This document shows positions 6,116 to 57,163 of a stretch of DNA of 64,000 nt, piece by piece. The DNA comes from Phaeosaccion multiseriatum (Eukaryota > Protista > Ochrophyta, other classes). The position numbers and the translations under genes were made by a program. The stretch covers positions 2,356,001 through 2,420,000 of the forward strand of contig OZ218963.1 in assembly GCA_965112735.1 (NCBI GenBank), given 5' to 3'. The notes below the pieces were generated by a model. It had not been told where the DNA came from, ran no database searches, and worked only from the letters and a program-made list of their open reading frames with translations. Numbering within the stretch: the first letter of the stretch is position 1; every line of letters begins with the position of its first letter.

Positions 6116-6497
6116 TGTGCTAAGTTCAGATAACGTCTTATTATCCTGAACCTCTAGTATTGCGCTAGTAATTTTGTACTAGCGCAATACTAGAGGTTCA
6201 GGATAATAAGACGTTATCTGAACTTAGCACAAAAATATTTCCGAGGTTGGGGGTTCAGATCCCTTGTGTGACCAGAAAGTTAGTCGTCCCGAGGGGAGGA
6301 TAACTCGTTAGTCGTCCCGAGGGGAGGATAACGGATATGACCCCGCAACCCGGGGAAATATTTTTGTGCTAAGTTCAGATAACGTCTTATTATCCTGAAC
6401 CTCTAGTATTGCGCTAGTAAATAATTAAAATAAAATTTTATTTACTAGCGCAATACTAGAGGTTCAGGATAATAAGACGTTATCTGAACTTAGCACA
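6116..6497. mobile_element. Hairpin-ended element family C, complete H-S-H
   Basis: Two near-perfect palindromes TGTGCTAAGTTCAG...CTGAACTTAGCACA with AT-rich loops; TSD TGCA (6112-6115/6498-6501). Confidence 0.92.
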
Positions 6498-11410: not shown

Positions 11411-11491
11411 TGTTAGAAGTCGTACTTTTGGTACCTCCCGGTCTGAATTCAGAGGGCAGGTATCAGTCTAGCAAAAGTACGACTTCTAACA
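11411..11491. mobile_element. Solo family-A hairpin
   Basis: 81-bp TGTTAG...CTAACA; TSD GGAG (inside a GGA-rich tract, so weak evidence on its own). Confidence 0.8.
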
Positions 11492-11615: not shown

Positions 11616-13324
11616 TGTAAAGAGTCTCGTTGCTCTCCACCTAGGATAGGAGTAGCCGCATGGACAAGGTAATAGCAACCCCAAAGCCAGCCTGGCAGCC
11701 AGCCTTGTCTCTATTAGCTTTATCCGTGAGCCATCCTAAACGACCAACCTGCTGGGAGGTGAGTGAGAAACGGGCCACGCACCGTTTCTCACCGTATTTG
11801 CCTGGGCCTGGGCCATTGACATAATACTGACTTTCAACATCCCCGTCAGCCATCCCTGCACTTCTAACATCCCCCTGAACTAAACTATTGCGTGTCCCCA
11901 CGCAACTCAAAGCGGGTTCGCCTACTAAAGCTCGACTTGTAGCAAAAGCCTCCATGTTGCTTCCAATAAAAACGGATGAGAAATATGCAAAACTCACCCA
12001 GGTGTGTGCGACCGCTCCTCCAACACACACCCTCCTGTATTGGTGAGAAAACCCCACGACTCAAACTCACCCACACAGGCTCACGGATGAGAACATCCCA
12101 TGACTCAAACTCACCCGCGCAATTCTCTATCTCCACTCCTACTCGCCACCAGCGTTGCCAAAGCCTCGTTGCGCACCACTAATGCTGACTGCTCAAGTGT
12201 TTACTGGTGTGCCTACAAGGCACCCAGACAGTCCCTAAAGCAGCCTTGCGAGTATCCTTCTCTGTCTCCCGCCAAGCTCCGTGCAACAGCAACAGCCGCG
12301 CTGCTGCCACACTCGAAAGCCGTGCCCGCTGTAGGGCACCGCTCTCGGCAATTCTCTATCTCCACGGCCCACCAAGCTCCAGCAGCAATTTCCGTGCAAC
12401 AGCAACATCCGTGCTGCTGCCACACTCGAAAGCCATGCCCGCTGACTAAGGCACCACTCCCGGCAATTCTCTATCTCCACGGCCCACCAAGCTCCAGCAG
12501 CAATTTCCGTGCAACAGCAACATCCGTGCTGCTGCCACACTCGAAAGCCGTGCCCGCTGTAAGGCACCGCTCCCGGCAATTCTCTATCTCCACGGCCCAC
12601 CAAGCTCCAGCAGCAATTTCCGTGTAACAGCAACATCCGTGCTGCTGCCACACTCGAAAGCCATGCCCGCTGTAAGGCACCGCTCCCGGCAATTCTCTAT
12701 CTCCACGGCCCACCAAGCTCCAGCAGCAATTTCCGTGTAACAGCAACATCCGTGCTGCTGCCACACTCGAAAGCCGTGCCCGCTGTAAGGCACCGCTCCC
12801 GGCAATTCTCTATCTCCACGGCCCACCAAGCTCCAGCAGCAATTTCCGTGTAACAGCAACATCCGTGCTGCTGCCACACTCGAAAGCCGTGCCCGCTGTA
12901 AGGCACCGCTCCCGGCAATTCTCCATCTCCACTGCCCACCAAGCTCCAGCAGCAATTTCCGTGTAACAGCAACATCCGTACTGCTGCCACACTCGAAAGC
13001 CATGCCCGCTGTAAGGCACCGCTCCCGGCAAACTCAAAGCTACCGAGCTGCTGCCTGAGCCTCTTGGCCAAGGTCAGCTGCCTTCGGGATTCTTTGGGGT
13101 TGTGAAGAGTCACGTTGCTCTCCACCTAGGATAGGAGTAGCCGCATGGACAAGGTAATAGCAACCCCAAAGCCAGCCTGGCAGCCAGCCTTGTCTCTATT
13201 AGCTTTATCCGTGAGCCATCCTAAACGACCAACCTGCTGGGAGGTGAGTGAGAAACGGGCCACGCACCGTTTCTCACCGTATTTGCCTGGGCCTGGGCCA
13301 TTGACATAATACTGACTTTCAACA
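11616..13324 (-). mobile_element. Non-coding TRIM family 1 (LTRs 11616-11839 and 13101-13324)
   Basis: 224-bp direct repeats TG...CA; PPT GGGGA; no coding domains; flanks do not match. Confidence 0.9.
12280..13031. repeat. ~113-bp tandem repeat (~6.5 copies) inside the TRIM
   Basis: Unit ...CAATTCTCTATCTCCACGGCCCACCAAGCTCCAGCAGC... recurs at 12350, 12465, 12578 etc.; fewer copies at 17833-18245. Confidence 0.9.
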
Positions 13325-15729: not shown

Positions 15730-17334
15730 TGTGGAGGTATGCTCACAAATGTCGTCAGTTCATAGTTTCAGTTTCTTCGTTCAGTTTCAGTTTCCTTTTA
15801 GTTCTTTCCATCTCCTAAAATATTACTTCATCTCTCGTTGTTACGATATAAGGCATCCCAATATGCCTTCAGTATTATCCAAACGTTACGATATAAGGCA
15901 TCCCAATATGCCTTCAGTATTATCCAAACGTTTGGATAATACTGAAGGCATATTGGGATGCCTTATATCGTAACACTCGTCCTTTCGTTTTCTCACGAGT
16001 GCTCCACCTCTGGTGGATAGCGACTGACCTCCTGCTATGTGCAGGTAGGGTCTATTGCTATTGGTAGTCATCCTTTCAGTGCACGACTCCACAATAACTA
16101 GTTATTACCGGATAGTACATTTCATACACTTTCCAATTTCAGCGGCGACCAATGTCCGTCTCGCCACTACAACACCCGGTGGTAGGCTGTACACCACCCG
16201 CGGTAGGCTCTTCCAGCATCGAGGTCTACATCCAGCCTTTTTTGGCCGATCCCAGTCAGAGAGCGGCCGCAGTGGATCGATGCCAGCAGCAGATTGTGCA
16301 GCTCTTTTCGGCGCTGGATAAATGTGGGCAGCTCGCCGTGGTCTACAACGAGAGTGCGGACGAATGGGTAGAAGGCACAGCTTCTGCAATCAGCGGAGGC
16401 CTCGCTGCCGGCCTCAAGCCCCAACATGTTTTCCTACAAGCGGCGTACTCCACCTTTGGACCTCATTCTTCACACCTTCCAGGGCCCTCTCTTGGTGCCC
16501 AAGATCAGCTATGCCATCACGGATAACGACATGACCAAGTTGGTTACCGTGGGCCGCGCCACCCTGAAGGAGCTCGGCATTAATATCCAAGAGGCCCTTG
16601 GTAAGGCAGCAGCGACGCAGCACATCAAAGACGGCGCCACCGGCCCTCCGCGTCAGGCGTCGGAACGTACTGTCACCTTTCTCCGTGACCGTTACTCTCC
16701 TCACTTCTAATCTTCTTCTGTTTCCCTCGGACTCTTTCCTATACCTTCTGAGTACCAATGTGCCCTGAAATAATTCTCCCTACCCTCTGGTGTTTCTAGA
16801 CTGTTTGTGAGGCCGCTTTTTCCCTCCCCCTTGTGTGAGGCAGCTGTTCCCTCCATCTGTTCTGTTCCCAAGTCGGTGTAGCTAGGGCTAATTCTCTCTA
16901 CTCTCTGGTGTTTCTGGACTGTTTGTGTGGCCGCTTTTTCCCTCCCCCTTGTGTGAGGCAGCTTTTCCCTCCATCTGTTCTGTTCCCAAGTCGGTGTAGC
17001 CAGTCTGTGTGGATTTCCCTCTTTTCCTTACTTCCTTTCCTCCTATTTGTGTTCATCTCTTTCTCTTTCCTTATCATGTCTGCGTATGCACACATGCTTT
17101 CAAAGGGGGGACTGTGGAGGTATGCTCACAAATGTCGTCAGTTCATAGTTTCAGTTTCTTCGTTCAGTTTCAGTTTCCTTTTAGTTCTTTCCATCTCCTA
17201 AAATATTACTTCATCTCTCGTCCTTTCGTTTTCTCACGAGTGCTCCACCTCTGGTGGATAGCGACTGACCTCCTGCTATGTGCAGGTAGGGTCTATTGCT
17301 ATTGGTAGTCATCCTTTCAGTGCACGACTCCACA
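15730..17334 (+). mobile_element. Deleted gypsy derivative (TRIM-like), LTRs 15730-16093 and 17113-17334
   Basis: 222-bp LTRs TGTGGAG...CTCCACA; PPT AAAGGGGGGAC; TSD GTGT; residual protease tail (VGRATLKELGINI). Confidence 0.9.
15839..15975. mobile_element. Family-D hairpin (left arm duplicated) in a 5' LTR
   Basis: TGTTACGATATAAGG...CCTTATATCGTAACA; 5-bp TSD CTCGT; empty site in the sister LTR at ~17217. Confidence 0.92.
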
Positions 17335-18378
17335 GTGTGCACATTTATTACATTTAATTCTAATTCAAATAACTACTTCGAAGTAATTACATATGGAAAT
17401 GAAAATGGCGCTGGCCTGCTGGGCCCAGGTTAGGGCCAGACCCACCCCGCCGTGATGGCAGCTGGAGGGGTGAGGCAGCATCACCCCACGGTTCGTGCTC
17501 AAAAATGTTAGAAGTGCAGAGATGGCTGACGGGGATGTTGAAAGTCAGTATTATGTCAATGGCCCAGGCCCAGGCAAATACGGTGAGAAACGGTGCGTGG
17601 CCCGTTTCTCACTCACCTCCCAGCAGGTTGGTCGTTTAGGATGGCTCACGGATAAAGCTAATAGAGACAAGGCTGGCTGCCAGGTTGGCTTTGGGGTTGC
17701 TATTACCTTATCCATGCGGCTACTCCTATCCTAGGTGGAGAGCAACGTGACTCTTTACAACAACCCCAAAGAATCCCGAAGGCAGCTGACCTTGGCCAAG
17801 AGGCTCAGGCAGCAGCTCGGTAGCTTTGAGTTTGCCGGGAGCGGTGCCTTACAGCGGGCACGGCTTTCGAGTGTGGCAGCAGCACGGATGTTGCTGTTAC
17901 ACGGAAATTGCTGCTGGAGCTTGGTGGGCCGTGGAGATAGAGAATTGCCGGGAGCAGTGCCTCACAGCGGGCACGGCTTTCGAGTGTGGCAGCAGCACGG
18001 GTGTTGCTGTGGCACGGAAATTGCTGCTGGAGCTTGGTGGGCGGAGGAGACAGAGAACTGCCGGGAGTGGTGCCTTAGACAGCGGGCATGGCTTTCGAGT
18101 GTGGCAGCAGCACGGATGTTGCTGTTACACGGAAATTGCTGCTGGAGCTTGGTGGGCCGTGGAGATAGAGAATTGCCGGGAGTGGTGCCTTAGACAGCGG
18201 GCACGGCTTTCGAGTGTGGCAGCAGCGCGGCTGTTGCTGTTGCACGGAGCTTGGCGGGAGACAGAGAAGGATACTCGCAAGGCTGCTTTAGGGACTGTCT
18301 GGGTGCCTTGTAGGCACACCAGTAAACACTTGAGCAGTCAGCATTAGTGGTGCGCAACGAGGCTTTGGCAACGCTGGT

Positions 18379-20923
18379 TGTAAGGCATCCTTTTGCTAGG
18401 CTGGCAGCTATCCACTGAATATTCACGGGGGTAGCTGCCAGCCTAGCAAAAGGATGCCTACTTACATGCCTGTCAGTTAAGGTCGATCCTTCCCCCCCCT
18501 CCGAAAACTCCTCCGAAAACCTTGGGGGGGTAACTACCTAGGGGAAAGGCGCACTTTTATAGTGTCGACCTGTCCGTGGATCGATTTTTTGGGTCCGTGG
18601 AGCGATTTTTTTTGGTCCGTGGAGCGACTTTTTTCCTATAATTTTCTGCTCACCCCCCCCCTTCCCCCTCCTCTAAGAAGGTCAACGCTGCTTAAATAAC
18701 CACAACTGCTACATTCCAGCAGTAGTAATGGCTTAGTGAAGGATTTCTCATGGCAGGAACGTGGCAGGGCTGGTAGTAGCAGCAGCAGTCAAGCAAAGAG
18801 AGGAACAAATCAAACATTTCAAACCATGACACCACCAGCAGCAGCAGAGACAAATGGAGGAGAATGAAGAGGCCTTAGTGGGGCAGCACAAAAGGATGGA
18901 ACAGCACCACCTGTGTGACAGTCCTGAAGAGATTTCTGGCGCACAGGGCTCTGAGAATACGAGTGGAAAGGCCGCAGGAGCGCACGACGACGATGACAGT
19001 GATTGGGACGACGAGACTTGGACGCAAGCCGTTGCTCTGGCAGATGAAGCCGCTGCGGCGGTACAACCAGCGACCGCTTCGAAACCGGGCACTCAAGCGG
19101 CAGTGGAGACTGAGCTTGCGACAATTGCCGCAGCACAGGAGGAGACGCGGTGAAACAATTGCAGACAGCTATGCAGAGATTGAATATCGAGAAGGCGGCT
19201 GTAGAAGATGCATACGAAGTTCGAGGAGGACGAGGCCGGCCCCTGAAGGGAATAAGCGAGAAGCTGCGGTTGAATGGTGCAGCTATGAAAGGGATTGATG
19301 AGAATTTGCTTCTCCCAGCGGAGAAGGAAGAGAAGCGAGAAAGAGGGCTGTGACTTGTCTTCGAGCGCAGACAGGGTAGATGGTGCAAGTGGTGACCACT
19401 TCGTAGGGTTTTCTTCGCCGCCCCTTGGTCGCACGTCTAAGCGGTACGTTCTCAATGATCTCCTCTTCCTTCTTGATGCCTGGCTGCTCTTGTCCACGCC
19501 CCCCGCCCACTCTGGGCCGCCCTTTCTGAACATACCTTAACACACTTATTACCCCTGTTGTTCTCGCCCCCTTTTTACATCTTTTTTTGTGCTAGCAGGG
19601 GTGAGAAAGACGAGGATGAGGACGAGGAGGATGGAAATACGGGCGACAAGGGGGGGCGGTGGTAGTGGGGGAGGGTTTGGGAAGAATAGACCACCAGCGC
19701 AGACTGAGTTCACTCGAGGCGGCAAGGGATCCAAAGGAAGGGTTGCCTACCTGGCAAACTCCCTACTACAGGGCCTCGACGCCAAGCCGCCAGTCTGAAG
19801 TGGGAGGGCATGCCCAACGTGACGTGTTTGTCTGGCCCCCCCACCTCTTCCACAACCTTGGAGAGGACCACCAGCAGCCTCTTTGCGCATGGGATGCATC
19901 GTCAGAGTGTGTACAAGCTTATGGGTGGACGTCGCCGCAGCGGGCTGTGTCTGTCACCAGCCTCGAGCAGGAGGAGGAGGAGGAGGAGGAGGAGGGGAGG
20001 GAGGGAAGAGGGGGAGGAGGAGGAGGAGGAGGACCATCATCATCAGCAGCAAGAGAATCACAAGGGGGAGGAGGGGGGGGGGGGGGAAGGAGGAGGAGAA
20101 TCAGCTGTGGGAGGAGGAGGAGGAGGAGGAGGAGGAGGAGGAGTAGGAGTAGGAGTAGCAGGTGGTGCTGGTGCTGGAGGAGACGGGGGGGGGGGGCGGG
20201 GGAGGAGGAGGAAGAGTTGCAGGTGCTGCTGAGGCTGGAGAAGGAGGGGGGGGAAGGAGGAGGACGAGGAGGGGGAGGAGCAGCAGCAGCAGCAGCCGCC
20301 ACAGCACTGTGGCCGGCACGGAGGATCAGGGGCAGGAGCATCTGTAGCGCCTGCAGAGGCTGCTGCTGCAGAGGGTGGTGTCGCTTTCGGGGGAGGTGAG
20401 AGTACCCACGAGAGGCAGCTATGGAAGAGGAGGGAGGCCGCGAAAAGGAGAAGAAGAGAGGCAGGCGAGGAGGGAAAGGAGAAGGCGAGGCTCCAGAAAA
20501 AGGCAGCGCGGGAAAGGGAAAGATTACAGCAGGATAAGGACCGGCCAGAGGGTGATTTACCCGTTTCCGTGTGCATAGTATTGTATATACAACACTTAGG
20601 TCTTCTACAGTTGCCTCTACTCTGGGGAGGAGAAGGAGAGAGAGGAGTGTCGCCGCAGGCGGGGAAAATTTCTAATTCCTTTTTTTTCTCCTTTTTTGGG
20701 CCGGCGGTCGACGGTATAAAAGTGCGCCGATTTCTCCCACACCGAGCCTGTTACCTCGAATTTCAGTGTCATGCCCAACTTTCGCCCTCGGAAATTTTCT
20801 CACCATCCTCAGAATCGAACCCCGTCTGGGCATGTAAGAAGGCATCCTTTTGCTAGGATGGCAGCTATCCACTGAATATTCACGGGGGTAGCTGCCAGCC
20901 TAGCAAAAGGATGCCTTCTTACA
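18379..20923. mobile_element. Hairpin-ended element family B (H-S-H) enlarged by a nested TIR element
   Basis: H 18379-18466 and 20833-20923; TSD TGGT; empty site at ~12145. Confidence 0.9.
18548..20728. mobile_element. Non-autonomous TIR DNA element (~2.2 kb)
   Basis: TIR GGCGCACTTTTATAnnGTCGACC at both ends; splits the B spacer; no clean TSD; only low-complexity ORFs. Confidence 0.65.
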
Positions 20924-21459
20924 TGGTGGCGAGTAGGAGTGGAGATAGAGAATTGCGCGGGTGAGTTTGAGTCATGGGATGTTCTCATCCGTGAGCCTGT
21001 GTGGGTGAGTTTGAGTCGTGGGGTTTTCTCACCAATACAGGAGGGTGTGTGTTGGAGGAGCGGTCGCACACACCTGGGTGAGTTTTGCATATTTCTCATC
21101 CGTTTTTATTGGAAGCAACATGGAGGCTTCTGCTACAAGTCGAGCTTTAGTAGGCGAACCCGCTTTGAGTTGCGTGGGGACACGCAATAGTTTAGTTCAG
21201 GGGGATGTTAGAAGTGCAGAGATGGCTGACGGGGATGTTGAAAGTCAGTATTATGTCAATGGCCCAGGCCCAGGCAAATACGGTGAGAAACGGTGCGTGG
21301 CCCGTTTCTCACTCACCTCCCAGCAGGTTGGTCGTTTAGAATGGCTCACGGATAAAGCTAATAGAGACAAGGCTGGCTGCCAGGCTGGCTTTGGGGTTGC
21401 TGTTACCTTGTCCATGCGGCTACTCCTATCCTAGGTGGAGAGCAACGTGACTCTTTACA

Positions 21460-23316: not shown

Positions 23317-23530
23317 TGTAAGAAGGCATCCTTTTGCTAGGCTGACAGCTATCCACTGTGCTAAGCTCAGATAACGTAAAATTATCCTGAACCTCTAGTA
23401 TTGCGCTTAGCACACCACTGAAATTTCACGGGGGTAGCTGTCAGCCTAGCAAAAGGATGCCTTCTTACATTCCTGTCAGTTAAGGTCGATCCTTCCCCCC
23501 CCTCCGAAACCTTGGGGGGGTGACTACCCG
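23317..23530. mobile_element. Family-B hairpin plus partial spacer, with nested 58-bp family-C element (23357-23414)
   Basis: C insert TGTGCTAAGCTCAG...GCTTAGCACA flanked by CCAC/CCAC. Confidence 0.85.
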
Positions 23531-30604: not shown

Positions 30605-31059
30605 TGTAAGAAGGCATCATTTTGCTAGGCTGGCAGCTATCCACTGAATATTCACGGGGGTAGCTGCCAGCCTAGCGAAAGGATGCCTTCTTACATGCCT
30701 GTCAGTTAAGGTCGATCCTTCCCCCCCCTCCGAAAACCTCCGAAAACCTTGGGGGGGTTATTACCTAGGATTTCTCCCACACCGAGCCCGTGAATTTCAG
30801 TGTCATGCCCAACTTTCGCCCTCGGAAATTTTCTCACCATCCACAGAATCGAACCCCGTCTGGGCATGTAAGAAGGCATCCTTTTGCTAGGCTGGCAGCT
30901 ACCCCCGTGAATAATGGATGGTGAGAAAATTTCCGAGGCAGGGCGAAAGTTGGGCATGACACTGAAATTCACGGGCTCGGTGTGGGAGAAATCCTAGGTA
31001 GTTTTGCCATAAATATTCAGTGGATAGCTGCCAGCCTAGCAAAAGGATGCCTTCTTACA
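30605..31059. mobile_element. Family-B inverted dimer (partly deleted), ~220 bp upstream of GMD
   Basis: H-S'-half H-S(part)-half H; TSD CCCC (within a C-run). Confidence 0.85.
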
Positions 31060-39153: not shown

Positions 39154-39876
39154 CTTCCCTCTTGCTGCGCCCCTGCAGCTGCTCCCTCCGAGCGTGCCTA
39201 ATTATGCCTGATATCCGTGCCTGCTGCTGCTGCTGCTGCCTCTGCAGCTGCTGCGGTATCCAACACCTGCTGCTGCGCCCCCTGCCTCTCCAGCCAAGCC
39301 TGCTGTATCTCCTGCCGCTAACCTCTAAATCAGCGGTCCCCTCTGATTAAGTATAGCGGATACCCGTGCCTCCTGCTGCTGCCCCTGCAGCTGCTGTATC
39401 CAATCCCTTGCTGCTGCCCCTGCAGCTGCGCGCCAATCCTTCCGTGCCTCCTGCTGCTGCCCCTGCAGCTGCTCCTTGCAATATCCCTAGCTACCTCTTG
39501 CTGCCGATCCACGGTAGCGCTGCTGTGCCACTCTTTCAAAGCCAAGCAATAAATTCTCCCCTGTGGTAGATTGTCCTGCCTGAGGGTTTCCGGTCACACA
39601 TTCTGGGGTATAATAAGAATGTCGGTTTCCTAGGCACGCCCCGAGGGGGTTCAACGGCTCTAGCGTTTCACCCTCCTCTTTGTGGGCACAAGCTTTGCAT
39701 CAGCAAGTAGTAGAGATATATTATCAATACGGACACTGACGCCCCACCATAGGCGCAGCATATACTTAGTCCAAACCCCTTAACGTTTCTACTATCTTAG
39801 CTTAGCACAGAACTAGTTCTCGCTTTAGAAAAGCTTTGGAGAAGGATTTTCTCGGACCGATTGGAGGAGCGGCATC

Positions 39877-42800
39877 ATGGCGGTTCAAGGCATCATCATG
39901 AGGGACCCAACCCATTATCCGGAGATACGGACGCCTCTATCTGCGGAAGTCGTCAGCGAGTTCTTACTGCAGTACGATCAGTCCGCGCTCAGGGATAGGG
40001 ACAAGCCGCTGGATATCCCCAGCATGGTGCAGCTCATCGACCCAGCCCATCGTTTTGGAATAGCCATCGCCAATCAAGTGTCGGAGGCTCAGCTCACGTC
40101 CAAGATGGTACGGGATTACTTGGAGAGGTGGTTGAAGAAGAATCGCAGGGAGGACGTCAACGGAAATGCCACTCTCAACGAGATAATCAGGAAGACGGTA
40201 CTCGTGTAGTCACTATGATCCGGACCCTCTCCAATTCAAGCACAATCTTCAGTACATGTGCCAGCAATACCTTCGCATGATCCACGAGTCAGCAGCAAGG
40301 AAGGAGTACCTGAACTTGAACCCCACCGATACGAATTTCCTTGGTCCGAACGGAAAGCACGCTGCCAAAGGGATGCAGCGAGGCTTACTCACCATCATCA
40401 AGAATTATGACCCATGCATGGAGAAGATGCTGGTGGACGCGTTCAAAGATGGACAGAAGGACTGGGGAGAGCATCACGGGGAGTGGATGGAGAAATTCGT
40501 CAGACACTTGTGCCAGTGGGCCACCATGAGAGCGGCAGCACGGCGTATCGGCGGTAAGGCCGAACATTTCCTTCCCGGACTCAAGGGTGACCAAGGGGCA
40601 TCTGGAGGCGGCGGGGGAGGCGGTGGTGGGCAAGGCAAAGGTGCAGGCGGCAAGCGCAAGTGGCAGCAGGAGCAGCAGCCAAAGCGTACGGGTGCAGAGA
40701 CCTCCTCGAAGGAGACAGCAGCGGGCAAAGAGACAGCCAGCAACCCATTGAAGAAGGCCCGTACTCCGAAGTGCTGGGCCTGCGACAAGCCGCATCGGAT
40801 TGACGACTGCCCTACAACCACTGCCGAAGACAAGAAACGCATCAAGGCAGAGAAACAGAAGGCGTGGGAGCAGAGGAAGGCTGAGGCGAAGAAACCGGGG
40901 GTGACGTCCGTCTCATCTTCTTCGGCTGCGGCAGGTGTTTCTTTGCCAGGGCCAGTTGCTATGGACCTCACGGGAGACCGCATGAGCGTGGTTCTCGTGA
41001 ATGACACGACTCCGGAGGTGCGGATGTCGGCGCAAGCCCTGTTTGACAGCGGATGCGATGTGGGTATGGTCATGGGTGGTGACCTGGCTCGCACGTGGGT
41101 CGGAAAGGGTGGTGGCGTACTAGAGGCCTGTGAGCCTTCGGAGTGCGTCACTGCTGCTGGACCTGTGACTGCCAACGAAGTGTTGTGCGGCAGTCACCTT
41201 GAGATAGAGCTGAGTCATGGAAGCGTGAGTACAGCGCAGCTGGACAAGGAGTTCAGATCCATGTTGGTTCTTGAGAGCTTGGGCAGCAGACTGATTCTGG
41301 GCCGGCCTTTGCATAAGGCACTGGGCTTGGAGTCTTTGACTGAGCAGTTGCACAGAGTGCACGAGAAACGGTCGGAGGAGACCCTGCAGAGGGAGCGTGA
41401 CGACGCTTCCCCTGCGACAGGGGCTGCCCCGACTAAGCAGCAGAGTGTTGAGAAGAGCGTGTGTTCTATGGGCGTTGAGACCATCCAAGACTATGCTGAT
41501 TTTGAGGCAAGCAACTTCCCCGTGCAAGTATTGGGGGTAGGAGCGCAGGAGGTTGCGGCCGAGAGCCCCCCTCCTGTCGCCAGTGCAGAGGCACCAGAGG
41601 TTAGCGCCATTGGCGGCCAACCGCTTAATAGTAAAGACCGTGAAGAGTGTGAAGGTGTACCGGATACTATTCAAGGGCCATCAGAGGGAGTTCCCCCTTC
41701 TGAGGCACGCCGTAGAGAGGTGCTAGGTCCCATTGTGGACAAAGCAATCACTGATCATGATTTCCCTGCGGAGCTGAGAGAGCCAATGATGGAAGCTCTC
41801 TTAGAGTTCGACGTGTGGCGGGAAGAGTTGCTCTTTAGCGACGGCCCCGCTAACGTAGAGCCAATGGAGGTGACGTTTACCAATAAGGTACCGAGCTCCC
41901 GTCTCCCCATAAGGCAACAAGGCGCAAAGGGTGCTTTTGTAAATGACTTTTGCAACAAGTTGATAGACAAAGGCCTGGGTTATAGCAACCCGCAGAGCGC
42001 TCATGGCAGCCCGGCGTTTGCAGTGGGCAAACCCGGCAAGCCAGGCAAGTACCGTATCGTCTGCGACTTTCGCGAAGTCAATGAAAAGGTACAGAAGGTC
42101 GATTTTGGGATGATGAACATTGAAGACGCCGTAGCCTCCATGTTGGGTTGCCTATGGTTCATCGAGATAGATGGGGTTGACATGTATTGGCAATTCCCAC
42201 TAGGCAAGTTGAGCCAAGTTGCTCACACCTATATATTCCCAAATGGCAAAGTGACGCCAACTCGAGTACCCCAGGGGGCTAAGAACTCGGGCGCTTACGT
42301 CCAAGGCCAGATGACCCACCTCTTTCGCAAAGAGTTGTGCAAGACCCACGCCGTCTACATTGACAACGTAGCGTACTGGGCAAAGGTGGGAGAGGAGATG
42401 GTGAGTCTCACTCGATTGACGATGAAGCGCCTCCACAGTGCCAACATCAAGATAGGATTGAACTCGTTCCGTTTCGGTAGCGAGCTCAAGTTCCTTGGCC
42501 GCGTGCACGACCGACGCGGCACACGACATGACCCCGCCAGAGTGCAGGGCCTGACCAGTCTCGCGGCCCCAGAGACGGCTGGAGATTTGATGACTTTCTT
42601 CTGCAGCCTGCAGTGGTTTCATCGATACATCAAGGACTTCGCTAAGCTAGTGGGTCCTTTGAACGCGCTGTTGAACAAAGCCCTCGGGCAGGCTAACGCT
42701 AAGCCTCATCAGCACAAGCGCTCCAAGGCAGTGGCCAAGACGATTCCATTGGCTTCTGTGGGGTGGGACACAGAGCACGACGACGCTTTCTTCCAGATCA

Positions 42801-45721
42801 AGCGCGTTCTTGCACAGAACACGGTGCTGTCGCACCCAGACCCAACCAAACTGGCACTGGTATTCCCAGATGCTAGTGACCTCTACTGGGGATGTATGAT
42901 TACATACATAGACCCCAAAGAGCTGTGCCTTCCGGTACATGAGATGAACCACATCCCGGTGGCCTTCGGCTCAGGCGCCTTTGAAGGCGCAGAGCTGAGG
43001 CGTGCCACCATCGACAAGGAAGGAGACGCGACACTCCGAGGCTTGATCCAGAACGAGTACGCTTTGGTCGGTGCACAGAAAGTGCACATCTTTTGCGACC
43101 ATCGCAACTTGGCGTTCATGATGAGCAACGACAGCAAGTACCCTGGCATGACTAAGCCTATGAGGGACAGGCTGCAGCGTCAGGCCGTGCGCCTTCAGAG
43201 CTTTGACTATGTCATTGTCCACTTCCCTGGTTATCTCCATGATTGGGCCGACCCCATTAGCAGGCGGTACACGCACCCGGTGAGCCTCACCCCTAGTGTG
43301 CTCGCCTTGGGCAAGTTTGGGCCCATGCAAGTGTTTGACACTATGTGTGACGACTTCACTTGGCCCTCCACAACTGAGATTGCCAGTCTGCAGGCCGACG
43401 CTCTTCAGGAGCTCCAGCAGGCTAGCAAGGAGGTGGGAGAGAACGGGCGCCGCCTGCTCCTCTCATCAGTTGGCGACGACGGGTTGATTCGAGCGTGCCA
43501 TCCGACGAGCAACCCCGCTGACAGCACCCGCATTTGGATTCCCTCGGTGGGAGCCAAGGCGGAAGACATGCACCTGAGGCTGTGTGTGACTGGCCATCAG
43601 GGTATGATGGGCCATCAGGGAGAGACAAACACCCTGAGTGCTATTAAGGAGAAGTTCATCTGGCAGTCGCTAGACAAGGACGTGCGCAGCCTCGTTCAGA
43701 ACTGTCTCCACTGCCTCACCAACGGCAAGGGCGAGAGAGTGCCTCGCCCCCTGCTAGCTCAATGGCACGCCACTGGACCCCAGCAACTCATCTGGTTTGA
43801 CTTCGTCAAGATTGGCGATGGAGTCATATGGGCAGAGTCCCCAGAAGGGTTCATGAAGCTTCAGGTCAAGCAAGTGCTGTGCATCTTTGATGATTTTTCA
43901 TCATTGTCAATGTATGAGCCATGTTTGGAAGCTACTGCACGAGTGTGTGCACGCGGTCTGTTGCGCTGGTTCGCACAGCATGGCGTAGTGCCCAGGTGGC
44001 AGAGTGACCGAGGCAGTCATTTCCTAAATGAGGTGATACGTGAGTTAAGTCAGCTCTTGCGGTGCAACCACCACTTTGTGGTGGCACACAACCCATACAG
44101 TCGAGGATTGGGCGAGCGTGGTGTACAGACACTGCAGAAGATCATGAGATCAATGATGTCTGAACTACGGCAGCCGCCCGAGACATGGCCGCAGCTACTG
44201 CCAGTGATGGAGGCTGTTGAGAACAGCTCCAACAAGAGCAGTCGGTCTAACTTGTCTCCCATCCAGCTGCACAGTGGTCACGTACCACAGCGGCCTCTCG
44301 ACACGATTTTGATCCACGACGCGGATCGAATGCAAAAGGTTCGGCTACTGCAGCTGACCCCGGCGCAGAGAGACACCCTTGCGACACAACTCCATCAGAG
44401 GAAGGAGGGGCAGCGTGCCGAGGCGGCGCGCCAACTGACTACCCTCCGCGATCACAAGCGCGATGGCATCAACCAGAGGTTGATGAGTGGCAGACGTGGT
44501 GCAGAGCATCGTCAGGACTTGGCCAGAGCTAAGCAGCTCAACAGCGAGACGCTGTTTCAGGTCGGAGTCTACGTACTCGTTGCAACAGTAGGGCCTACAA
44601 GCAAGATACTAGGCAAGTGGCATGGGCCCTGCCGAGTGCTTGAAGCCCTTGAGCAACACGTGTACAAGGTGGAGGAGTGTTAGAAGTCGTGCTTTTGCTA
44701 GACTGGTACCTACCCTCTGAATTCAGACCGGGAGGTACCAGTCTAGCAAAAGCACGACTTCTAACAAGCCCTAATGCTAGAAGTCGAACCCCCCCCCCCC
44801 CACCGCACATAGTGGAGAGAAGTAGCTCGCAGTCTGGGAATCAGACTAATGGGTGCCAGCCGGTACCAGTTTTCGCCGAAAAACACACTTTTTTCACAAG
44901 CTACAGCCAGGATTCGAACTCGCAATGGCCTTGTTAGAAGTCGTGCTTTTGCTAGACTGGTACCTACCCTCTGAATTCAGACCGGGAGGTACCAGTCTAG
45001 CAAAAGCACGACTTCTAACACAAGTTCAGAGGGTAGGTACCAGTCTAGCAAAAGCACGACTTCTAACACAAGGCCATTGCGAGTTCGAACCCTGGCTGTA
45101 GCTTGTGAAAAAAGTGTGTTTTTCGGCGAAAACTGGTACCGGCTGGCACCCATTAGTCTGATTCCCAGACTGCGAGTTACTTCTCTCCACTATGTGCGGT
45201 GGGGGGGGGGGGGTTCGACTTCTAGCATTAGGGCTTGTTAGAAGTCGTGCTTTTGCTAGACTGGTACCTCCCGGTCTGAATTCAGAGGGTAGGTACCAGT
45301 CTAGCAAAAGCACGACTTCTAACAGGAGCTTGTGGGCAAGAAGCGTACCTATGAGGTACACATCAGCCGGCTCCGCTACTACTGCGGTGCTCACGTTAAC
45401 GTCACTACCGACGTACTTCAACAGATTTCGTATAACACCCAAGACTTTGTGGTGGAGGCCTTTGAAGGCCTCGTTAAGCACGCAGATGCTTCATGGCACG
45501 TCATTGTTAAGTGGCGTGGCTTTGACGCCCTCGAGAATAGCGAGGAGCCCATCGAGGCGCTGCACGAAGATACTCCACGTTTACTGGAGACCTACCTGCA
45601 GCACCATCAGGACAAGCAGTTGATCAGCGCAGTCCGAGCCTATCTGCGCAAGACTACGACGCGATCGGCTACTAAGCCGCCGCGCTCCGCGCGCACACGA
45701 AAGTGGACACAAACTAGATAG
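39877..45721 (+). pseudogene. gag-pol (Zn knuckle, protease, RT, RNase H, integrase, chromodomain); frameshift near 40200 and family-A insertion at 44678
   Basis: CWACDKPHRIDDC; LFDSGCD; YRIVCDFREVN, YIDN; FPDASD, CDHRNL; SDRGSHF; VKWRGFDALENSEEP. Confidence 0.93.
44678..45324. mobile_element. Family-A inverted dimer
   Basis: H-S-H-half H-S'-H; TSD GGAG; empty site in the sister copy at ~63405. Confidence 0.95.
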
Positions 45722-46705
45722 ACACACTTACTTCCCAGTCGGCTCGAACTGTCGCTTGGGGGTAGTGTGGTAGATTGTCCTGCCTGAGGGTTTCCGGTCA
45801 CACATTCTGGGGTATAATAAGAATGTCGGTTTCCTAGGCACGCCCCGAGGGGGATCAACGGCTCTGGCGTTTCACCCTCCTCTTTGTGGGCACAAGCTTT
45901 GCATCAGCAAGTAGTAGAGATATATTATCAATACGGACACTGACGCCCCACCATAGGCGCAGCATATACTTAGTCCAAACCCCTTAACGTTTCTACTATC
46001 TTAGCTTAGCACATCCCACAAATAAATTCTCCCACCGGTTCCCAAGCAAAGCCAAGCCAAGCAAAGCTAATTAAGCTAAACGCCCCTGACGGAGCAAGCT
46101 GTGGCGTGTCCGTGCCTTGGACACTAACCAAAAACGTCCACGTGCTAGTCTAGCGCACGATGAACTCAAAGTCTCCCTCTGCTGAGCCTATTGGTCAAGT
46201 GCCAAACTGTCTTCGAGCTTTGGGGTTGTGGAAAGTCGTGCTTAGACCTCCACGAAACGGACTAGACACACAGATAAGGTAGCAGCACCCCAAAGCTAGC
46301 CTGACAGCCGGCCTTGTATCTATTAGCTTATCTATGCACTGTCCTAAACGACCACCTACAGGAGGATAGTGAGAAACGGGCACCGTTTCTCACTGCGTTG
46401 CCTAGGCCTGGGCCACTGACATACGACTGACTTTCCACATCCCCGTCAGCCATCCCTGCACTTCTAACACTCCCCTGACAAGACTGTTGCGTGTCCCCAC
46501 GCAACTCAAGCGTTTTCACCTACTGAAGCTACACTGTAGCAAACCCCTTTATGCTGCTTCCAAAAAAACCGGATGAGAAATATGCAAAACTCACCCACCA
46601 GTGTGTGACGTGGCACTCCACAGGTCACCCTGCCACACACCTGCCACGGCAGGGTGAGAAAGCCCAAGGCCTCAAACTAACCCTCCGTGGCTGCGCACGG
46701 CTGCG

Positions 46706-49030: not shown

Positions 49031-49684
49031 TGTAAGAAGGCATCCTTTTGCTAGGCTGGCAGCTATCCACTGAATATTCACGGGGGTAGCTGCCAGCCTA
49101 GCAAAAGGATGCCTTCTTACATGCCTGTCAGTTAAGGTCGATCCTTCCCCCCCCTCCGAAAACTCCTCCGAAAACCTTGGGGGGGTAACTACCTAGGATT
49201 TCTCCCACACCGAGCCCGTGAATTTCAGTGTCATGCCCCACTTTCGCCCTCGGAAATTTTCTCACCATCCACAGAATCGAACCCCGTCTGGGCATGTAAG
49301 AAGGCATCATTTTGCTAGGCTGGCAGCTATCCACTGAATAATTTTAATTTTTTTATTCAGTGGATAGCTGGTTTTTATTCAGTGGATAGCTGCCAGCCTT
49401 GCAAAGGATGCCTTCTTACATGCCCAGACGGGGTTCGATTCTGTGGATGGTGAGAAAATTTCCGAGGGCGAAAGTTGGGCATGACACTGAAATTCACGGG
49501 CTCGGTGTGGGAGAAATCCTAGGTAGTTACCCCCCCAAGGTTTTCGGAGGAGTTTTCGGAGGGGGGGGAAGGATCGACCTTAACTGACAGGCATGTAAGA
49601 AGGCATCCTTTTGCTAGGCTGGCAGCTACCCCCGTGAATATTCAGTGGATAGCTGCCAGCCTAGCAAAAGGATGCCTTCTTACA
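49031..49684. mobile_element. Family-B inverted dimer
   Basis: H(49031-49121)-S'-central H(49295-49420)-S-H(49594-49684); TSD CACG. Confidence 0.95.
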
Positions 49685-50383
49685 CACGTACGTGTCTACG
49701 CCGAGGCACGTGCAGGCTCTATCGACTCAGTTGCGTACAGCCAAAGTGGTCGCCATGGATTCGGAGTGGGCGCGTCACCGACGGCGCGCGTCGCTGCTGC
49801 AATTGGCCGTGCAGGTTGGGCCGCTGCCGGATGTGGCGCGTGACTATGGGCTCTTGATTGATCTAGACGCGCATCAGAAGGCGGGGGGTATGATGGTACT
49901 GGCGCAAGTGTTGCGGGACCTGTGGGCCGAACCTTCGATTGTGAAGCTGGCTCACCACTGGAGTCACGACCAACGTGCCCTGGGCCGATGGCCGGCGCTC
50001 GCGGAGCATGTCCAGCACATCGTCGACTTGGTGGACACCAGTGACCTCTTTAAGCGCGTGTGCCCCGAACATGCTCAGTTCATCGGACTCCAGGACCTTG
50101 TCAGCATGTTTTTGGAGCAACACCTTAGCAAGGAGGAGCGGGCCACCGATTGGACGAAGCGGCCGCTGTCCGCCGCTCAACGGGAGTACGCGTTTGCTGA
50201 CGCTGCGGCGCTCCTTCGCCTCTGGCCTCGCATGGCGGAGTGTGTGCCGTTCGTCCATGGTGGGCCGGGGGTGGAGCTTAGCGCGATGAGCCCTGCTCAC
50301 ACTCCTGCGGAGCAGGAGGAGATGCAAGTCGGCAGGTTCATGCAGGCCGCGGTTGGTTATTGGGGCGATCGCGACCACGTGTC

Positions 50384-50857
50384 TGTTAGAAGTCGTACTT
50401 TTGCTAGACTGATACCTGCCCTCTGAATTCAGACCGGGAGGTATCAGTCTAGCAAAAGTACGACTTCTAACAAGACCGTTGCTAGAGGACGAACCCCCCC
50501 CCCCACCGCACATAGTGGAGAGAAGTAACTCGCAGTCTGAGAGGGCAGGTATCAGTCTAGCAAAAGTACGACTTCTAACAAGGCTAGTTGTGAGTTCGAA
50601 CCTTAGCTGTCGCTTGTGAAAAAGCGTATTTTTCGGCGAAAACTGTTACCATGGTCTTTCTCGCTCTGAGGCCTTCCAACAGCCCATGATGCTGATTCTC
50701 AGACTGCGAGTTACTTCTCTCCACTATGTGCGGTGGGGGGGGGGGGGTTCGTCCTCTAGCAACGGTCTTGTTAGAAGTCGTACTTTTGCTAGACTGATAC
50801 CTCCCGGTCTGAATTCAGAGGGCAGGTATCAGTCTAGCAAAAGTACGACTTCTAACA
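50384..50857. mobile_element. Family-A inverted dimer (partly deleted)
   Basis: H-part S-half H-S'-H; TSD TGTC. Confidence 0.93.
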
Positions 50858-53444
50858 TGTCACCGCTCTACATCTTTGGTGTCCACTCCAAGACGTTGGA
50901 GGTATTCGACCTGGCCAAACTGCAATTCAAACTGCAGTGCTCGTGGGAGACAATGATGCAGATGGTGGAGCGGTTCACGCGGACATATAAGCGCCAGCGG
51001 AAGGTGGTGGGCGCGTTGGCCAGTCATCTAGATACCATGATCGAGTTGCCATGGAAGCAAGTCCGTCAGGTGTCGCGTGACTACTTCTCGATGTGCACAC
51101 CAGCGGAGGCTCAGCAAACGGGTGCCGCGGCCGCTCATGCGTGGGCTGCATGGGAGGCCGAGCTTGAGGAGGATGCGTCTCGTCTGCTCTCGGAGGTGTG
51201 TCCAGCTGCCGTTGCTGGTGCCACCGAGGGTGAGGAGCTCGTTCCGGAGGAGGGCCGCATCACCCCCCCTGGGGAGCCGCCTGCTGCGGAGTCGCCGTCG
51301 GAGCCTGGTACGGCAGATCTACTGGTCACGGAAGAAGCAGGGGATGCAGGTAATGAAGCTGAGGATGCAGTGGATTCAGTTTCCAAGGAGCCGGGGGAGC
51401 AGGAGTCCACCTTGCAGCGCGAGCTTGATGGACATCGACGAGAGGCAGAGCGACAGTTTGGGTGGTCTCTACCAGGCACGGTGCCTGCTGCCGCGGCGCA
51501 CAGACGAGCGGCTGGAGCTTTGGGTGGCAGTCTGCATGTCGAGGCCGCGTGGTGGGTGCGTGCGCAGCGGGCTGATGCGGAGCTGGAAGCACTCCGTCGT
51601 CGTGTTCAGGCTGGGCCCACCGGCGGCGTGGTGGATGCAGGTGGGGGTGAGTTCTTTGTGGATGAGGACGGGCTCTTGATGCGTAAGTGGGCTCCTGGGG
51701 GCTTTCGGTGGCGGGTGCGGCACACTCGGCTACAAGTATGTGTGCCCAAGGAGATGCGGCCAGCCTTGCTGCATGCCGCCCACACCGATGCCATCGCAGG
51801 TGGGCACCAAGGCCCGGGACGTATGCTGGACGCGCTGCAAGAGCGCGTATGGTGGGAGAAGATGAATGCACATGCGCTGTATTGGGCCCGCTCCTGTCTG
51901 GCGTGTCAGACACGCAAGACTCCTCGCCGGCAGCCAAAGCCTGTACCGCTGTCGTCCATTTCCAAGGTGGATGGACCTTGGGCGGTCATGGGCGCTGATG
52001 TGGCTGGCCCCTTTCCTATGGGCATGGGCGGTGAGGAGTACCTCTTGGTGTTTCAGGATTGGTTCACGAAGTGGACAGTGGTGGTGCCTTTGAGGGCACA
52101 GGACTATACGGCGGAAGGTATTGCTCGGGCCTTCGTGCGGCATGTCGTCACCACCCTGGGTGTGCCCCGAGTGCTGGTGAGTGATCAAGGCTCGCAGTTC
52201 ACCAGTGCGCTCATGGGCGATGTGATGCGGGTTCTATCGGCGTCGCAAGTGTTCACGACGCCGATGCACCAACAGGCCAATGGGCAGGTGGAGCGCTTCA
52301 TGGCCACGATCAAGGACATGTTGGCGACGACCGTGGAGTCACAGATGCAGCAGTGGCCAGATTACGTCGCCGGGCTCACCTATGCGTACAACTGCCGCTC
52401 GCAGGAGAGCACGGGGATGGCGCCATTCTACGCCTTGTTCGGTCGGCACCCCCGGGTGCCTCTACAGGAGATGCTTCCGGCGCTAGTGGAGGACGGGTCG
52501 TTTTCGTCTGCCTCGGCATGGGTCCACGAACTGCGGGCACGTCTGGCTGCGGCTGCGGCGGTGGTCAATGGGAGGCGCTGCGACTACCACGGGAGATTGC
52601 AGCTGAAGAACGCCTCACGCCGTTGGCCGACGCCCCTGCGACCCGGAACCAAGGTGATGTTGTATCGTCCTGGTGCCGCCGCCCAGCAAGAAGGGGAAGA
52701 ACTCGAAGGGCCCCCGTCAGCGCAACTCAAGGCTCTGCAGCATTCGTGGGATGGTCCTTATACAGTCTTGCCTTGGCCATCTCTGGGGGGCTACTGTGCT
52801 CAGCATGGGCGGGTGAGTGAAGAGCACTATCAGGTCATGCAGCGCAGCGCAGTGTATCTGTCTATGAAACGGGTGCGCGGCAATGGTGTGGAGCAGCTGC
52901 AACGGGCGTACCACAGAGACTGGACGAAGCCGTTCATCGATGGGGTGAGCGAGCGGCCTTTCGGTCTCCCGGAAGGGTTCGCCAGGTATCATATCCGTTG
53001 GTGCTCTCCTCAGTGGGCTACCAGCGCAATGCAGGAGCAGCGTAGCTTAGAGCTGGACGAGGTGAGTGAAGGGAAAGTGCCCACGCTGGCGAGGATTGTG
53101 AAGTTCCGCTGGCGCAAAGCCACGGGGCTGCCACTGCGGCGAGAGTATAACGTGCGGTGGGCGGTGGCGGACGGCGGCACTTTCCAGACCTGGGAATGGG
53201 CTGAGTGGTTGCTGGAGCGGGGACACGCCAAGGCCATAGAGGCGTTCGAGAACGCCCTTCCGCACACTGCCCTTGATCCAGGAGTGAATGTCAAAAGAGG
53301 GCATAGGTCTAAACGGGAAAGCACGTTCCGTCTGCGGCAACATGAGAAGTGGGGCAGCGGGCTGGCGCACGAGACGCAATTCTATCGCTCGCATCTCGGC
53401 TTCTGAGGGAGCTGGCGGAAGAGGCGGGGGCGTAGTGAGGGGGA

Positions 53445-53639
53445 TGTTAGAAGTGGCCTAGTTGGGGTCCCTTGGGGACCCAATCAGTAGTGTAACGGCC
53501 GGAAAACGGGCCAACGAGACGGTAAATCAGTAATAAAGAAAGGAAGCGCAGCCTGCGTGTGGGCTGGCTTCCGGGTGCTTGCTTCAGCTTCTGCTCTGCT
53601 CTAGCTTGGCTTTGAGGCTAGCTGTCGGTAGTTTCGACA
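53445..53639 (+). mobile_element. Putative 3' LTR of the exonuclease-gypsy
   Basis: PPT GAGGGGGA then TGTTAGAAGT...TTTCGACA; AATAAA inside; right end inferred, no partner LTR in window. Confidence 0.65.
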
Positions 53640-54174: not shown

Positions 54175-54519
54175 TGTTAGAAGTCGTACTTTTGCTAGAC
54201 TGATACCTGCCCTCTGAATTCAGACCGGGAGGTATCAGTCTAGCAAAAGTACGACTTCTAACAAGACCGTTGCTAGAAGACGAACCCCCCCCCCCCCACC
54301 GCACATAGTGGAGAGAAGTAACTCGCAGTCTGAGAATCAGCATCATGGGCCAGCAAGCTGGTAACAGTTTTCGCCGAAAAATACGCTTTTTCACAAGCGA
54401 CAGCTAAGGTTCGAACTCACAACTAGCCTTGTTAGAAGTCGTACTTTTGCTAGACTGATACCTGCCCTCTGAATATTCAGAGGGCAGGTATCAGTCTAGC
54501 AAAAGTACGACTTCTAACA
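54175..54519. mobile_element. Family-A monomer H-S-H (345 bp)
   Basis: TSD CGTG. Confidence 0.95.
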
Positions 54520-54527
54520 CGTGTTCT

Positions 54528-54880
54528 TGTTAGAAGTCGTGCTTTTGCTAGACTGGTACCTACCCTCTGAATTCAGACCGGGAGGTACCAGTCTAGCAAA
54601 AGCACGACTTCTAACAAGCCCATTGCTAGAAGACGAACCCCCCCCCCCCACCGCACATAGTGGAGAGAAGTAACTCGCAGTCTGGGAATCAGACTAATGG
54701 GTCAGCAGGCCAGCAAGCCGGTACCAGTTTTCGCCGAAAAACACGCTTTTTTCACAAGCTACAGCCAGGGTTCGAACTCGCAATGGCCTTTTTAGATGTC
54801 GTGCTTTTGCTAGACTGGTACCTCCCGGTCTGAATATTCAGAGGGTAGGTACCAGTCTAGCAAAAGCACGACTTCTAACA
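54528..54880. mobile_element. Family-A monomer H-S-H (353 bp)
   Basis: TSD TTCT. Confidence 0.95.
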
Positions 54881-55526: not shown

Positions 55527-57163
55527 TGTTGGGATATCTCCCTCCTGGAGACTAGTGTCGTACTTGCACGAGTGTGGGAAAGCGTCTTATTAGCTACATA
55601 ACACGAAAAGAAGAAGAAGTGAACGGACTTGTACCAGCGATATGAGATCGATATCTAGTGTCGACATCGATTTATCTCAACACACCTCCTCGCCTGGTAC
55701 TGTCCATTCCGCTAACTACGCCCTAAAACCCATCATCTTTTCACGTAAAGCTACAAGTACTGCCGGGGTCACATGCTTCGTCAAAAGGTCAGCCAACTGC
55801 GCCTTCGAAGCCACGTACTCAAATGCAATAAGAGCCTCCTTCACTGCGTCTTGCAGAAAATGAAACCGAACATCAATGTGCTTCATCCTCCGTGTCGATG
55901 CATTGCTCTCTGCCAGCTTGATACACCCCATGTTGTCCTCAAAAACAACTGTCGCCTTCGACGAGTCATCAGGGAACAAGAAACTCAATACCTGCCTAAT
56001 GTATAATATTTCCTTCACACAGTCACTGGCCGCCATGTACTCGCTCTCCAGCGAAGACATCGCCACACTCAGCTGCAATCGCACACCCCAAGTGATAGCT
56101 GCACCTCCGTACATCAAAGCATAACCAGTCGAACTCCTGCGAGTGTCAACACATGCAGCGTAATTCGCGTCTGCATATGCTTCCAAAACACACTCGCCCT
56201 TGCCAAACACCAAAGCACGATCCACAGTACCCTTCAGGTACCCAAACACACGCATAGCCTGCTTCCAATGCTCAGGGCCGGGGTTCTTCATATACCGCGA
56301 CAACTCTCGAACAGCATAGGCAATATCAGGCCTTGTCCAGTTTGAGATCCACATCAAAACGCCCACCACACCGGGGTAGTCCTTGTCAGTCATAAAAGCT
56401 ACATCAGCTGCAGACGAGGGCTCCATACTCTTGCTGAGTGCTGTGCCAGACACACCGGGTGTCGAGTAAACTCGATCAGACTCCAAACCAAACTTCACTA
56501 TCATCTTCTTGATGTAGTGCTCCAATGTCAATGTGACAGTGCCTACGCTCCGGTTGAACACAACGCGCACTCCCAAAAACTGATCAACATTGGGCCCAAG
56601 TCTCTTCAACGAAAACTTGTTGTCCAGCTCTGTAAAGAGCCAGTCCACCACCTCCTGCTTTCCGCCGCAGGACAAATCATCAACAAATACAATGAGGATG
56701 CCAACAAGCTCCCCATTCTTCCACAAAACAAATAAACACGGCTCAGCGCCGCACTGTTGCCATCCAAGCTCAAGCAGAAACTTCACCAATGTCTGATACT
56801 GTGCTAAGTTCAGATAACGTCTTATTATCCTGAACCTCTAGTATTGCGCAATACTAGAGGTCGCAATACTAGAGGTTCAGGATAATAAGACGTTATCTGA
56901 ACTTAGCACAATACCAACGTCTCGGTGCCTGATGTAGACCATAGAGTGCCATCAGCAAGCGCATGACCTTGCCCTTCCGCAGAAAACCCGGAGGCGGCAA
57001 CACATACACCACCTCATGCTCTTGCAGAGGCGCATGCAGAAAAGCTTGATCCACATCAGCAAACTCACACACAAAACCAGACGTCTTCACGATGAAGAAG
57101 TGAACGGACTTGTACCAGCGATATGAGATCGATATCTAGTGTCGACATCGATTTATCTCAACA
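55527..57163 (-). mobile_element. Internally deleted Ty1/copia element (RT-RNase H retained), inserted in a family-2 LTR
   Basis: 3' LTR 55527-55682, partial 5' LTR ~57095-57163; 5-bp TSD AGAAC; ADVDQAFL, LYGLHQAPRRW, VFVDDL, YADANYA, KHIDVRFHF. Confidence 0.92.
56800..56910. mobile_element. Solo family-C hairpin in copia RT
   Basis: TSD ATAC; excision restores APRRWYQTLVKF. Confidence 0.93.

Follow-up and report, generated by a model that had tools for sequence, protein, structure and literature searches.

Background

The 58-bp copy at positions 23357-23414 of the window (that is, of the whole stretch of 64,000 nucleotides analysed here, G000:C14:2356001-2420000, in a eukaryotic assembly of 67 Mb and 22 contigs) raises the question of which enzyme inserts a non-coding element that retains so little of one of its ends. 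The copy belongs to a group of hairpin-shaped repeats in a region that is crowded with nested LTR retrotransposons, and an earlier note on this DNA had proposed that these hairpins are minimal integrase substrates that parasitise the integrases of both gypsy-type and copia-type elements. In this work, we compare the hairpin families with the resident LTR retrotransposons in their terminal sequences and in the length of their target-site duplications (TSDs), and weigh the proposal against the alternatives.

The 58-bp copy and its insertion site

The copy is a mini-element of family C, one of four families that we designate A-D. It consists of a left arm of 49 nt and a right tip of 9-10 nt that is the reverse complement of the tip of its arm, and it is flanked by the TSD CCAC at 23353-23356 and 23415-23418. 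Its host is a family B hairpin unit at 23317-23469, which measures 91 bp without the insert and represents the filled site; the intact B hairpin at 49031-49121 serves as the empty-site reference. Since the intact hairpin carries CCAC only once at the corresponding place, 23357-23414 is a true insertion with a 4-bp duplication, and the statement of the earlier note that this copy has only about 10 bp of right end is correct. In total, three hairpin insertions are exact when compared with their empty sites: the C mini-element in B (CCAC), an A dimer in the gypsy1 pol gene (GGAG) and a B array in a gypsy1 LTR (CTAT).

The four hairpin families

Families A-D are defined by scanning the window for inverted repeats and TGT..ACA pairs, and no copy of any of them has coding capacity. 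Their common component is a near-palindromic hairpin unit (H) of 89-116 bp, both outer tips of which resemble the terminal (att) sequence of an LTR. In the larger elements, H forms the ends: these are H-spacer-H elements, whose spacers measure about 130-215 bp, palindromic dimers with the arrangement H S+ H S- H, and longer arrays. It is also found solo and as internally deleted mini-elements of 37-63 bp. In no family is the hairpin the sole form, and all four also make larger elements.

Positions of the hairpin elements are given without strand. Family A is represented in the window by a palindromic dimer (H S+ H S- H) at 44678-45324 (TSD GGAG), which lies within the gypsy1 pol gene and is exact against an intact gypsy1 copy; by a dimer with a partly deleted centre at 50384-50857 (TSD TGTC), which lies in the gypsy2 pol gene between the exonuclease and integrase parts; by two monomers (hairpin-spacer-hairpin) at 54175-54519 (TSD CGTG) and 54528-54880 (TSD TTCT), which are 8 bp apart; and by a solo hairpin of 81 bp at 11411-11491 (TSD GGAG). 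Family B comprises a palindromic dimer at 49031-49684 (TSD CACG) and an element at 30605-31059, whose TSD, CCCC, lies in a C run. Besides the mini-element, family C includes an H-spacer-H element at 6116-6497 (TSD TGCA), with hairpin arms of 55 and 60 nt and loops that differ, and a solo hairpin at 56800-56910 (TSD ATAC). Family D is represented by a hairpin of 137 bp at 15839-15975, with the 5-bp TSD CTCGT.

Pattern searches of the whole genome find about 306 tip matches for A, 99 for B and a few dozen each for C and D, and most hairpin copies are identical over 28 nt. Internally deleted copies that retain merely 9-13 bp of one tip are still flanked by clean TSDs, which fits the description of a minimal integrase substrate. 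In public metagenomes, there is no exact match to the A tip.

Three further properties of the families are recorded here. Family B is strongly clustered, most of its 99 tip matches being located on the contig of the window at G000:C14:2.37-2.73 Mb; this is suggestive of local hopping or of a chromatin domain that the family prefers. The spacers of all four families carry a motif resembling a tRNA T-arm or B-box (GGTTCGAnnC type) about 8-15 nt from the hairpin junction (window 54400-54430 and 49270-49294; loci L001, L014 and L022), and in A and B the spacer end with this motif faces the central hairpin of the dimers; neither ARAGORN nor Rfam detects a tRNA, and no tRNA or known RNA is found in the window. 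At the A element L068 (G000:C7:3934010-3934655), the reverse complement of the right flank reads exactly as the left flank of 30 nt, so that the locus as a whole forms a palindrome larger than the element and is not a simple TSD insertion.

The resident LTR retrotransposons

In Pfam searches of the window, 40256-44683 encodes gypsy-type reverse transcriptase (RT), RNase H and integrase domains, 57768-59405 a copia-type RT, and 50686-53406 integrase domains. These belong to three families. The gypsy1 family (5.8 kb, LTR 248 bp) has an element on the forward strand at 39562-46013, with LTRs at 39562-39809 and 45766-46013 and the TSD TCCC; its C-like sequence is the tip of the 3' LTR, and its pol ORF (40256-44683) is interrupted by the A insertion. 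The LTR of a second gypsy1 copy lies on the reverse strand at 62720-62967, where it is inserted in a copia LTR, and carries the 17-mer that is compared with the C tip below. This copy cuts the other LTR of the copia element (62596-62720), so that the TSD of that element is unreadable within the window.

The gypsy2 family (12.4 kb, LTR 195 bp) is represented on the forward strand by a 3' LTR at 53445-53639, the first 10 nt of which are the A tip, and by the integrase part of its polyprotein at 50686-53406. Full copies contain a single frame of 3251 aa with RT, RNase H, 3'-5' exonuclease and integrase. The 906-aa integrase ORF at 50686-53406 was considered as a stand-alone transposase and rejected, since it is the tail of this RT-RNase H-exonuclease-integrase polyprotein, split by an A insertion. 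The exonuclease, of the DNA_pol_A_exo1 type, sits between RNase H and integrase (window 49692-50426; L099:167-9922); it is unusual for an LTR retrotransposon and might have a bearing on DNA-end processing. At L050 (G000:C10:804280-805680), a gypsy2 5' LTR directly abuts the final base of an A hairpin (ACA|TGT, nothing lying between them), and the gypsy2 copy is without a TSD.

A third family with gypsy-type tips has a forward-strand element at 17506-21459, with LTRs at 17506-17759 and 21206-21459 whose first 10 nt are again the A tip. In addition, an LTR family that shares the A tip (window 11616-13324 and many sites in the genome) consists mostly of small elements with LTR ends about 1.5 kb apart and is likely a classical non-autonomous LTR element. 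The copia family (about 5.4 kb) has an LTR of 174 bp on the reverse strand at 57483-57656, one tip of which is the D tip over 9 nt and the other of which matches it at 10/11 positions.

The gypsy1 LTR pairs differ at 0-1 of 248 bases, and of six copia LTR pairs four are 100% identical and two about 99%; thus, these possible helpers look recently active. Directly 3' of the 5' LTR, the resident gypsy1 and copia elements carry perfect palindromes of 10 and 12 nt (window 39810-39820; L034-L045). The palindromes occupy the expected position of the tRNA primer site, and the resident autonomous elements are without a tRNA-type site. A comparable palindromic substitute for the primer site has been described in fungal GalEa copia elements (PMC5445492).

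Duplication lengths and tip sequences

TSDs were scored genome-wide at the outermost tip pairs. Clean TSDs number 13 in family A, about 10 in B and 8 in C, all of 4 bp (31 clean 4-bp insertions in the three families together), and family D has a 5-bp TSD in 12/12. Among the LTR retrotransposons, the TSD is 4 bp in 9/10 gypsy insertions (6/6 for gypsy1 and 3/4 for gypsy2) and 5 bp in 5/6 copia insertions. The earlier note had claimed that A, B and C resemble gypsy in their 4-bp TSDs and D resembles copia in its 5-bp TSD, and had named a majority of 4-bp TSDs among D copies as an observation that would speak against it; the genome-wide counts uphold the claim, and no such majority is seen.

For the tips, five LTR families are compared, at both of their ends, with the first 50 nt of the arm of each hairpin family. 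As a background, unrelated LTR ends share a prefix of 3-5 nt and at most 7/12 positions. Between the C tip and the 3' (U5) end of the gypsy1 LTR, 15-16/17 positions agree, and 16/17 in the window copies at 62720, 39793 and 45997. Sequences of this 17-mer class occur 56 times in the genome, compared with 0 for a reversed control, and are confined to C hairpins and the gypsy1 LTR. The first 10 nt of A equal the 5' (U3) LTR ends of gypsy2 (53445) and of the third family (17506/21206). The D tip equals the reverse complement of 57648-57656 in the copia LTR (9/9) and matches the other end of that LTR, at 57483, at 10/11 positions. With TGT fixed and ten ends tried, our own arithmetic gives a chance of about 0.2% per family for a 9-nt prefix. 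These matches of A, C and D are as the earlier note had given them, and its reservation that the similarity might be no better than that between unrelated TG...CA elements does not apply against the above background.

The match of B is weak. The count of 9/11 that the note had given for the motif at 8015 is right, and this motif also ends another LTR family of the window, but the match (9/12 or 9/11 at most) is insignificant alone, and B is convincing solely as a relative of A. The A/B tip motif also ends several other LTRs in the window; thus, A and B would fit a clade-wide tip rather than one named helper. In particular, the putative helper of A cannot be named, since its tip motif is common to several gypsy-type LTR families.

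No LTR parent is known for the A, B and D arms past their first 10-17 nt. The half-hairpins L092 and L093 resemble an LTR that begins with the A arm and were considered as pointing to a parent of A; they were rejected, as what lies downstream is an unrelated repeat, which begins beyond the arm in numerous further copies.

Candidate inserting enzymes

The integrases at hand lie in RT-bearing polyproteins. We consider it probable that families A-D borrow the integrases of the resident gypsy or copia elements; the hairpin origin and copying route proposed in the next section are less certain. A linear duplex of A, B or C would be inserted by a resident Ty3/gypsy integrase with a duplication of 4 bp, and a linear duplex of D by a Ty1/copia integrase with a duplication of 5 bp; about 9-13 bp of the tip would apparently suffice for the integrase. 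As judged from tips and TSDs, such borrowing appears well supported, because the best-matching LTR end of each family belongs to a superfamily with the same TSD length. The proposal that the hairpins are minimal integrase substrates parasitising both gypsy and copia is likewise a likely one, given the pairing of tips with TSD lengths and the mini-copies with clean TSDs. Note that it is from the structures, TSD lengths, tip identities, empty sites and one fold-back fossil that we infer which enzyme would insert each family. Note also that the hairpins are end units of larger elements and dimers, and that integrase borrowing alone does not explain their copying. No shared packaging signal was found, the spacers having no significant similarity to gypsy1, to the ends of gypsy2, to copia or to the third family; an apparent spacer similarity to resident LTR elements was rejected because the matches are nested B copies.

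Cassandra is an example of the TRIM and LARD types of non-autonomous LTR retrotransposons, which A-D resemble in being short and non-coding, in having terminal repeat units that flank a short internal part, and in their TG..CA tips and TSDs of 4-5 bp. TRIMs are short and non-coding and depend on the proteins of autonomous LTR elements (PMC6934838). A-D could thus be TRIM-like miniature LTR retrotransposons with palindromic LTRs, copied by the usual two-jump reverse transcription, with solo hairpins as solo LTRs left by recombination; integrase borrowing would still hold in this case, and the copying would be ordinary. In some family A monomers, the two hairpins are in fact direct repeats, and a classical small non-autonomous LTR family, that with LTR ends about 1.5 kb apart, coexists in the genome. 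However, the hairpin pairs are mirror-oriented in most elements, and hairpins take the place of simple direct LTRs at the ends. Moreover, no tRNA-type primer site was found: the spacers start without TGG-type sites, and there is no tRNA in the window. Nor does a polypurine tract adjoin the downstream hairpin in A, B and D, and C has only GGGGAAA 6 nt off, whereas in the resident elements a G run precedes the LTR by 1-3 nt. Since polar palindromic dimers, hairpin-only copies with variable loops and asymmetric mini-copies also speak against it, we regard this explanation as unlikely.

Even less probable, in our judgement, is that A-D are non-autonomous cut-and-paste transposons of the Ginger type, mobilised by a dedicated transposase related to gypsy integrase, so that the likeness reflects common descent and not parasitism. 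An integrase-type enzyme generates the 4-bp TSDs (5 bp in TDD-4/5) of Ginger1 and Ginger2 (TDD) elements, which have TGTNR tips and inverted ends of 40-270 bp (PMC2836005), and A-D indeed have TGTNR termini and inverted ends within this range as defined there. However, each end of A-D is a full hairpin, and the target preference of Ginger is missing: 0/31 of the 4-bp TSDs are CCGG, CCGT or ACGG, and none has the AT-rich target of Ginger2 (RTATAY). The tips match particular resident LTR ends; that of C agrees at 16/17 positions with the LTR end of an element that carries RT and has direct LTRs. The fossil described below ties that LTR end to hairpin formation. In the clusters examined, no hairpin pair surrounds coding DNA. 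Neither the 55 rve matches nor the hairpin clusters yielded an RT-less Ginger-type transposase gene with hairpin ends, in a genome-wide integrase scan that is incomplete, the rve profile having missed even the gypsy1 and copia integrases. The singleton integrase matches L094 and L098 were tried as a Ginger-type gene and rejected, since these integrase-only fragments are without inverted ends and L098 has 200-bp direct repeats. At the latter locus (L098:4305-5914; G000:C10:785000-794999), the direct repeats enclose about 1.4 kb of integrase-only coding sequence, and no RT is detected nearby on that strand.

Non-coding sequence, internal deletions and long inverted or palindromic ends are also features of Foldback (FB-like) elements and MITEs. 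In the known foldback and MITE superfamilies, TSD length and tips differ from the LTR-element type, whereas A-D have the TSD length and tips of LTR elements. It is very improbable that A-D are Foldback-type palindromes spread by host recombination, replication errors or an unrelated transposase, with a merely coincidental likeness to LTR tips. Long palindromes, arrays and the inverted duplicated flanks of L068 do show that host processes reshape the elements, but the insertions are precise, with TSDs of fixed length at dozens of unrelated sites, the tip identity is far above background, and the split between 4 and 5 bp follows the imitated superfamily. Finally, a chance resemblance to LTR tips is largely refuted by the TSD and tip statistics.

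Origin and copying of the hairpins

For the proposed borrowing of integrases, a possible origin of the hairpin is indicated by a single fossil. Genome-wide, there is one place with two exact gypsy1 tips in inverted, outward-facing arrangement, and it is present twice by local duplication (L002 and L003). The hairpin arms at this place are the last 54 nt of the gypsy1 LTR, with 96% identity. On the right arm only, 11 nt follow that are identical to the gypsy1 primer-site sequence after the 5' LTR, and the similarity to gypsy1 then ends. When the flanks are aligned to copia, the hairpin plus 13 nt proves to be a precise insert in copia-like sequence, with no TSD. In yeast, retrotransposon cDNA is captured at chromosome breaks. 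From the observed boundaries, we infer that the insert may be a snap-back strong-stop cDNA that entered a break with no part played by integrase. Its outline is just the one expected of such a molecule: the U5 tip forms its beginning, the fold lies at a discrete point after 54 nt, and the copy of the primer site forms its end.

Minus-strand strong-stop DNA would begin at the primer site and extend across U5 and R as far as the RNA 5' end; if it folded back and copied itself, and with it the primer, a hairpin unit with the same LTR tip at both ends would result. Without the primer copy, such a snap-back molecule would offer a perfect integrase tip at both ends. Self-priming of retroviral strong-stop DNA has been discussed (PMC6088434). 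Snap-back strong-stop DNA is a dead-end by-product, whereas in A-D such a product seems to have been turned into the end unit of transposing families. This origin is represented by one locus in total: no outward-facing inverted pair is formed by the U5 tip of gypsy2 or by that of the third family, so that no fold-back fossil of these families is found, and the match of A to the U3 end of gypsy2, not to the U5 end, is not predicted by a fold-back origin. The gypsy1 LTR contains a TATA-like run whose end precedes the turn-back point by 31 nt; this is compatible with a transcription start at that point, although it is too weak to count.

The copying mechanism is partly constrained by the structure of the copies. 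Hairpin loops vary from copy to copy, often with small new palindromes, and the arms grow by loop bases; for example, in the C element at 6116-6497 the arms of one hairpin are 5 nt longer than those of the other. Certain substitutions recur as mirror images in the two arms of a hairpin or throughout the four arms of an element (L031 and L010), which is unlike the behaviour of independent inverted repeats. In A and B, one arm is distinguished from the other by 3-4 fixed inner positions, and the copies inherit this asymmetry; since it is inherited, faithfully so in A, the hairpins are not rebuilt from one arm in every cycle.

The palindromic dimers provide a further clue, as the same spacer end is always at their centre (A 7/7, B 4/4 and D 2/2). 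In A dimers, the outer units are mirror images and the central hairpin keeps the arm asymmetry. A single strand 5'-H S+ H-3' that folds its 3' hairpin, primes with it and extends the second strand would yield such a dimer. Only one strand polarity would then be used, which suits cDNA. Considering that the polarity of the dimers may reflect as few as three independent events, we give a single-stranded, hairpin-primed intermediate of one polarity a chance that comes close to even without reaching it.

Parvoviruses form head-to-head concatemers and have an imperfect terminal palindrome that occurs in two orientations. In their rolling-hairpin replication, terminal hairpins prime DNA synthesis (PMC3087758). 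The likeness to A-D is one of mechanism and not of membership: A-D have no Rep/NS1-type nickase or capsid gene, and they are integrated with TSDs, as would be done by an integrase. As a tentative proposal, in which we place limited confidence, A-D might constitute an undescribed class of non-coding elements that are born from snap-back strong-stop DNA, copied in retrotransposon particles through hairpin-primed single-stranded cDNA (in a rolling-hairpin-like manner with no nickase) and inserted by the integrase of a helper, with lineages adapted to gypsy and to copia. A literature search of incomplete coverage returned no description of hairpin-ended elements that imitate LTR tips, and the novelty of these elements is provisional.

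Implications

In practice, annotation is liable to mistake A-D elements for MITEs, Ginger elements or solo LTRs, and models of retrotransposons and of genes are disrupted by them. Known parasites of LTR retrotransposons are miniature copies that keep the LTRs and priming sites. Here, the parasite is apparently cut down to the integrase recognition tip, which is shown twice by means of a hairpin, and two lineages seem tuned to two integrase superfamilies within one genome. The copies would thus be a natural read-out of how little DNA the gypsy and copia integrases need, and as the families look recently active, these ideas are testable in the laboratory. More generally, the elements point to a possible route by which failed products of reverse transcription may become new mobile families.
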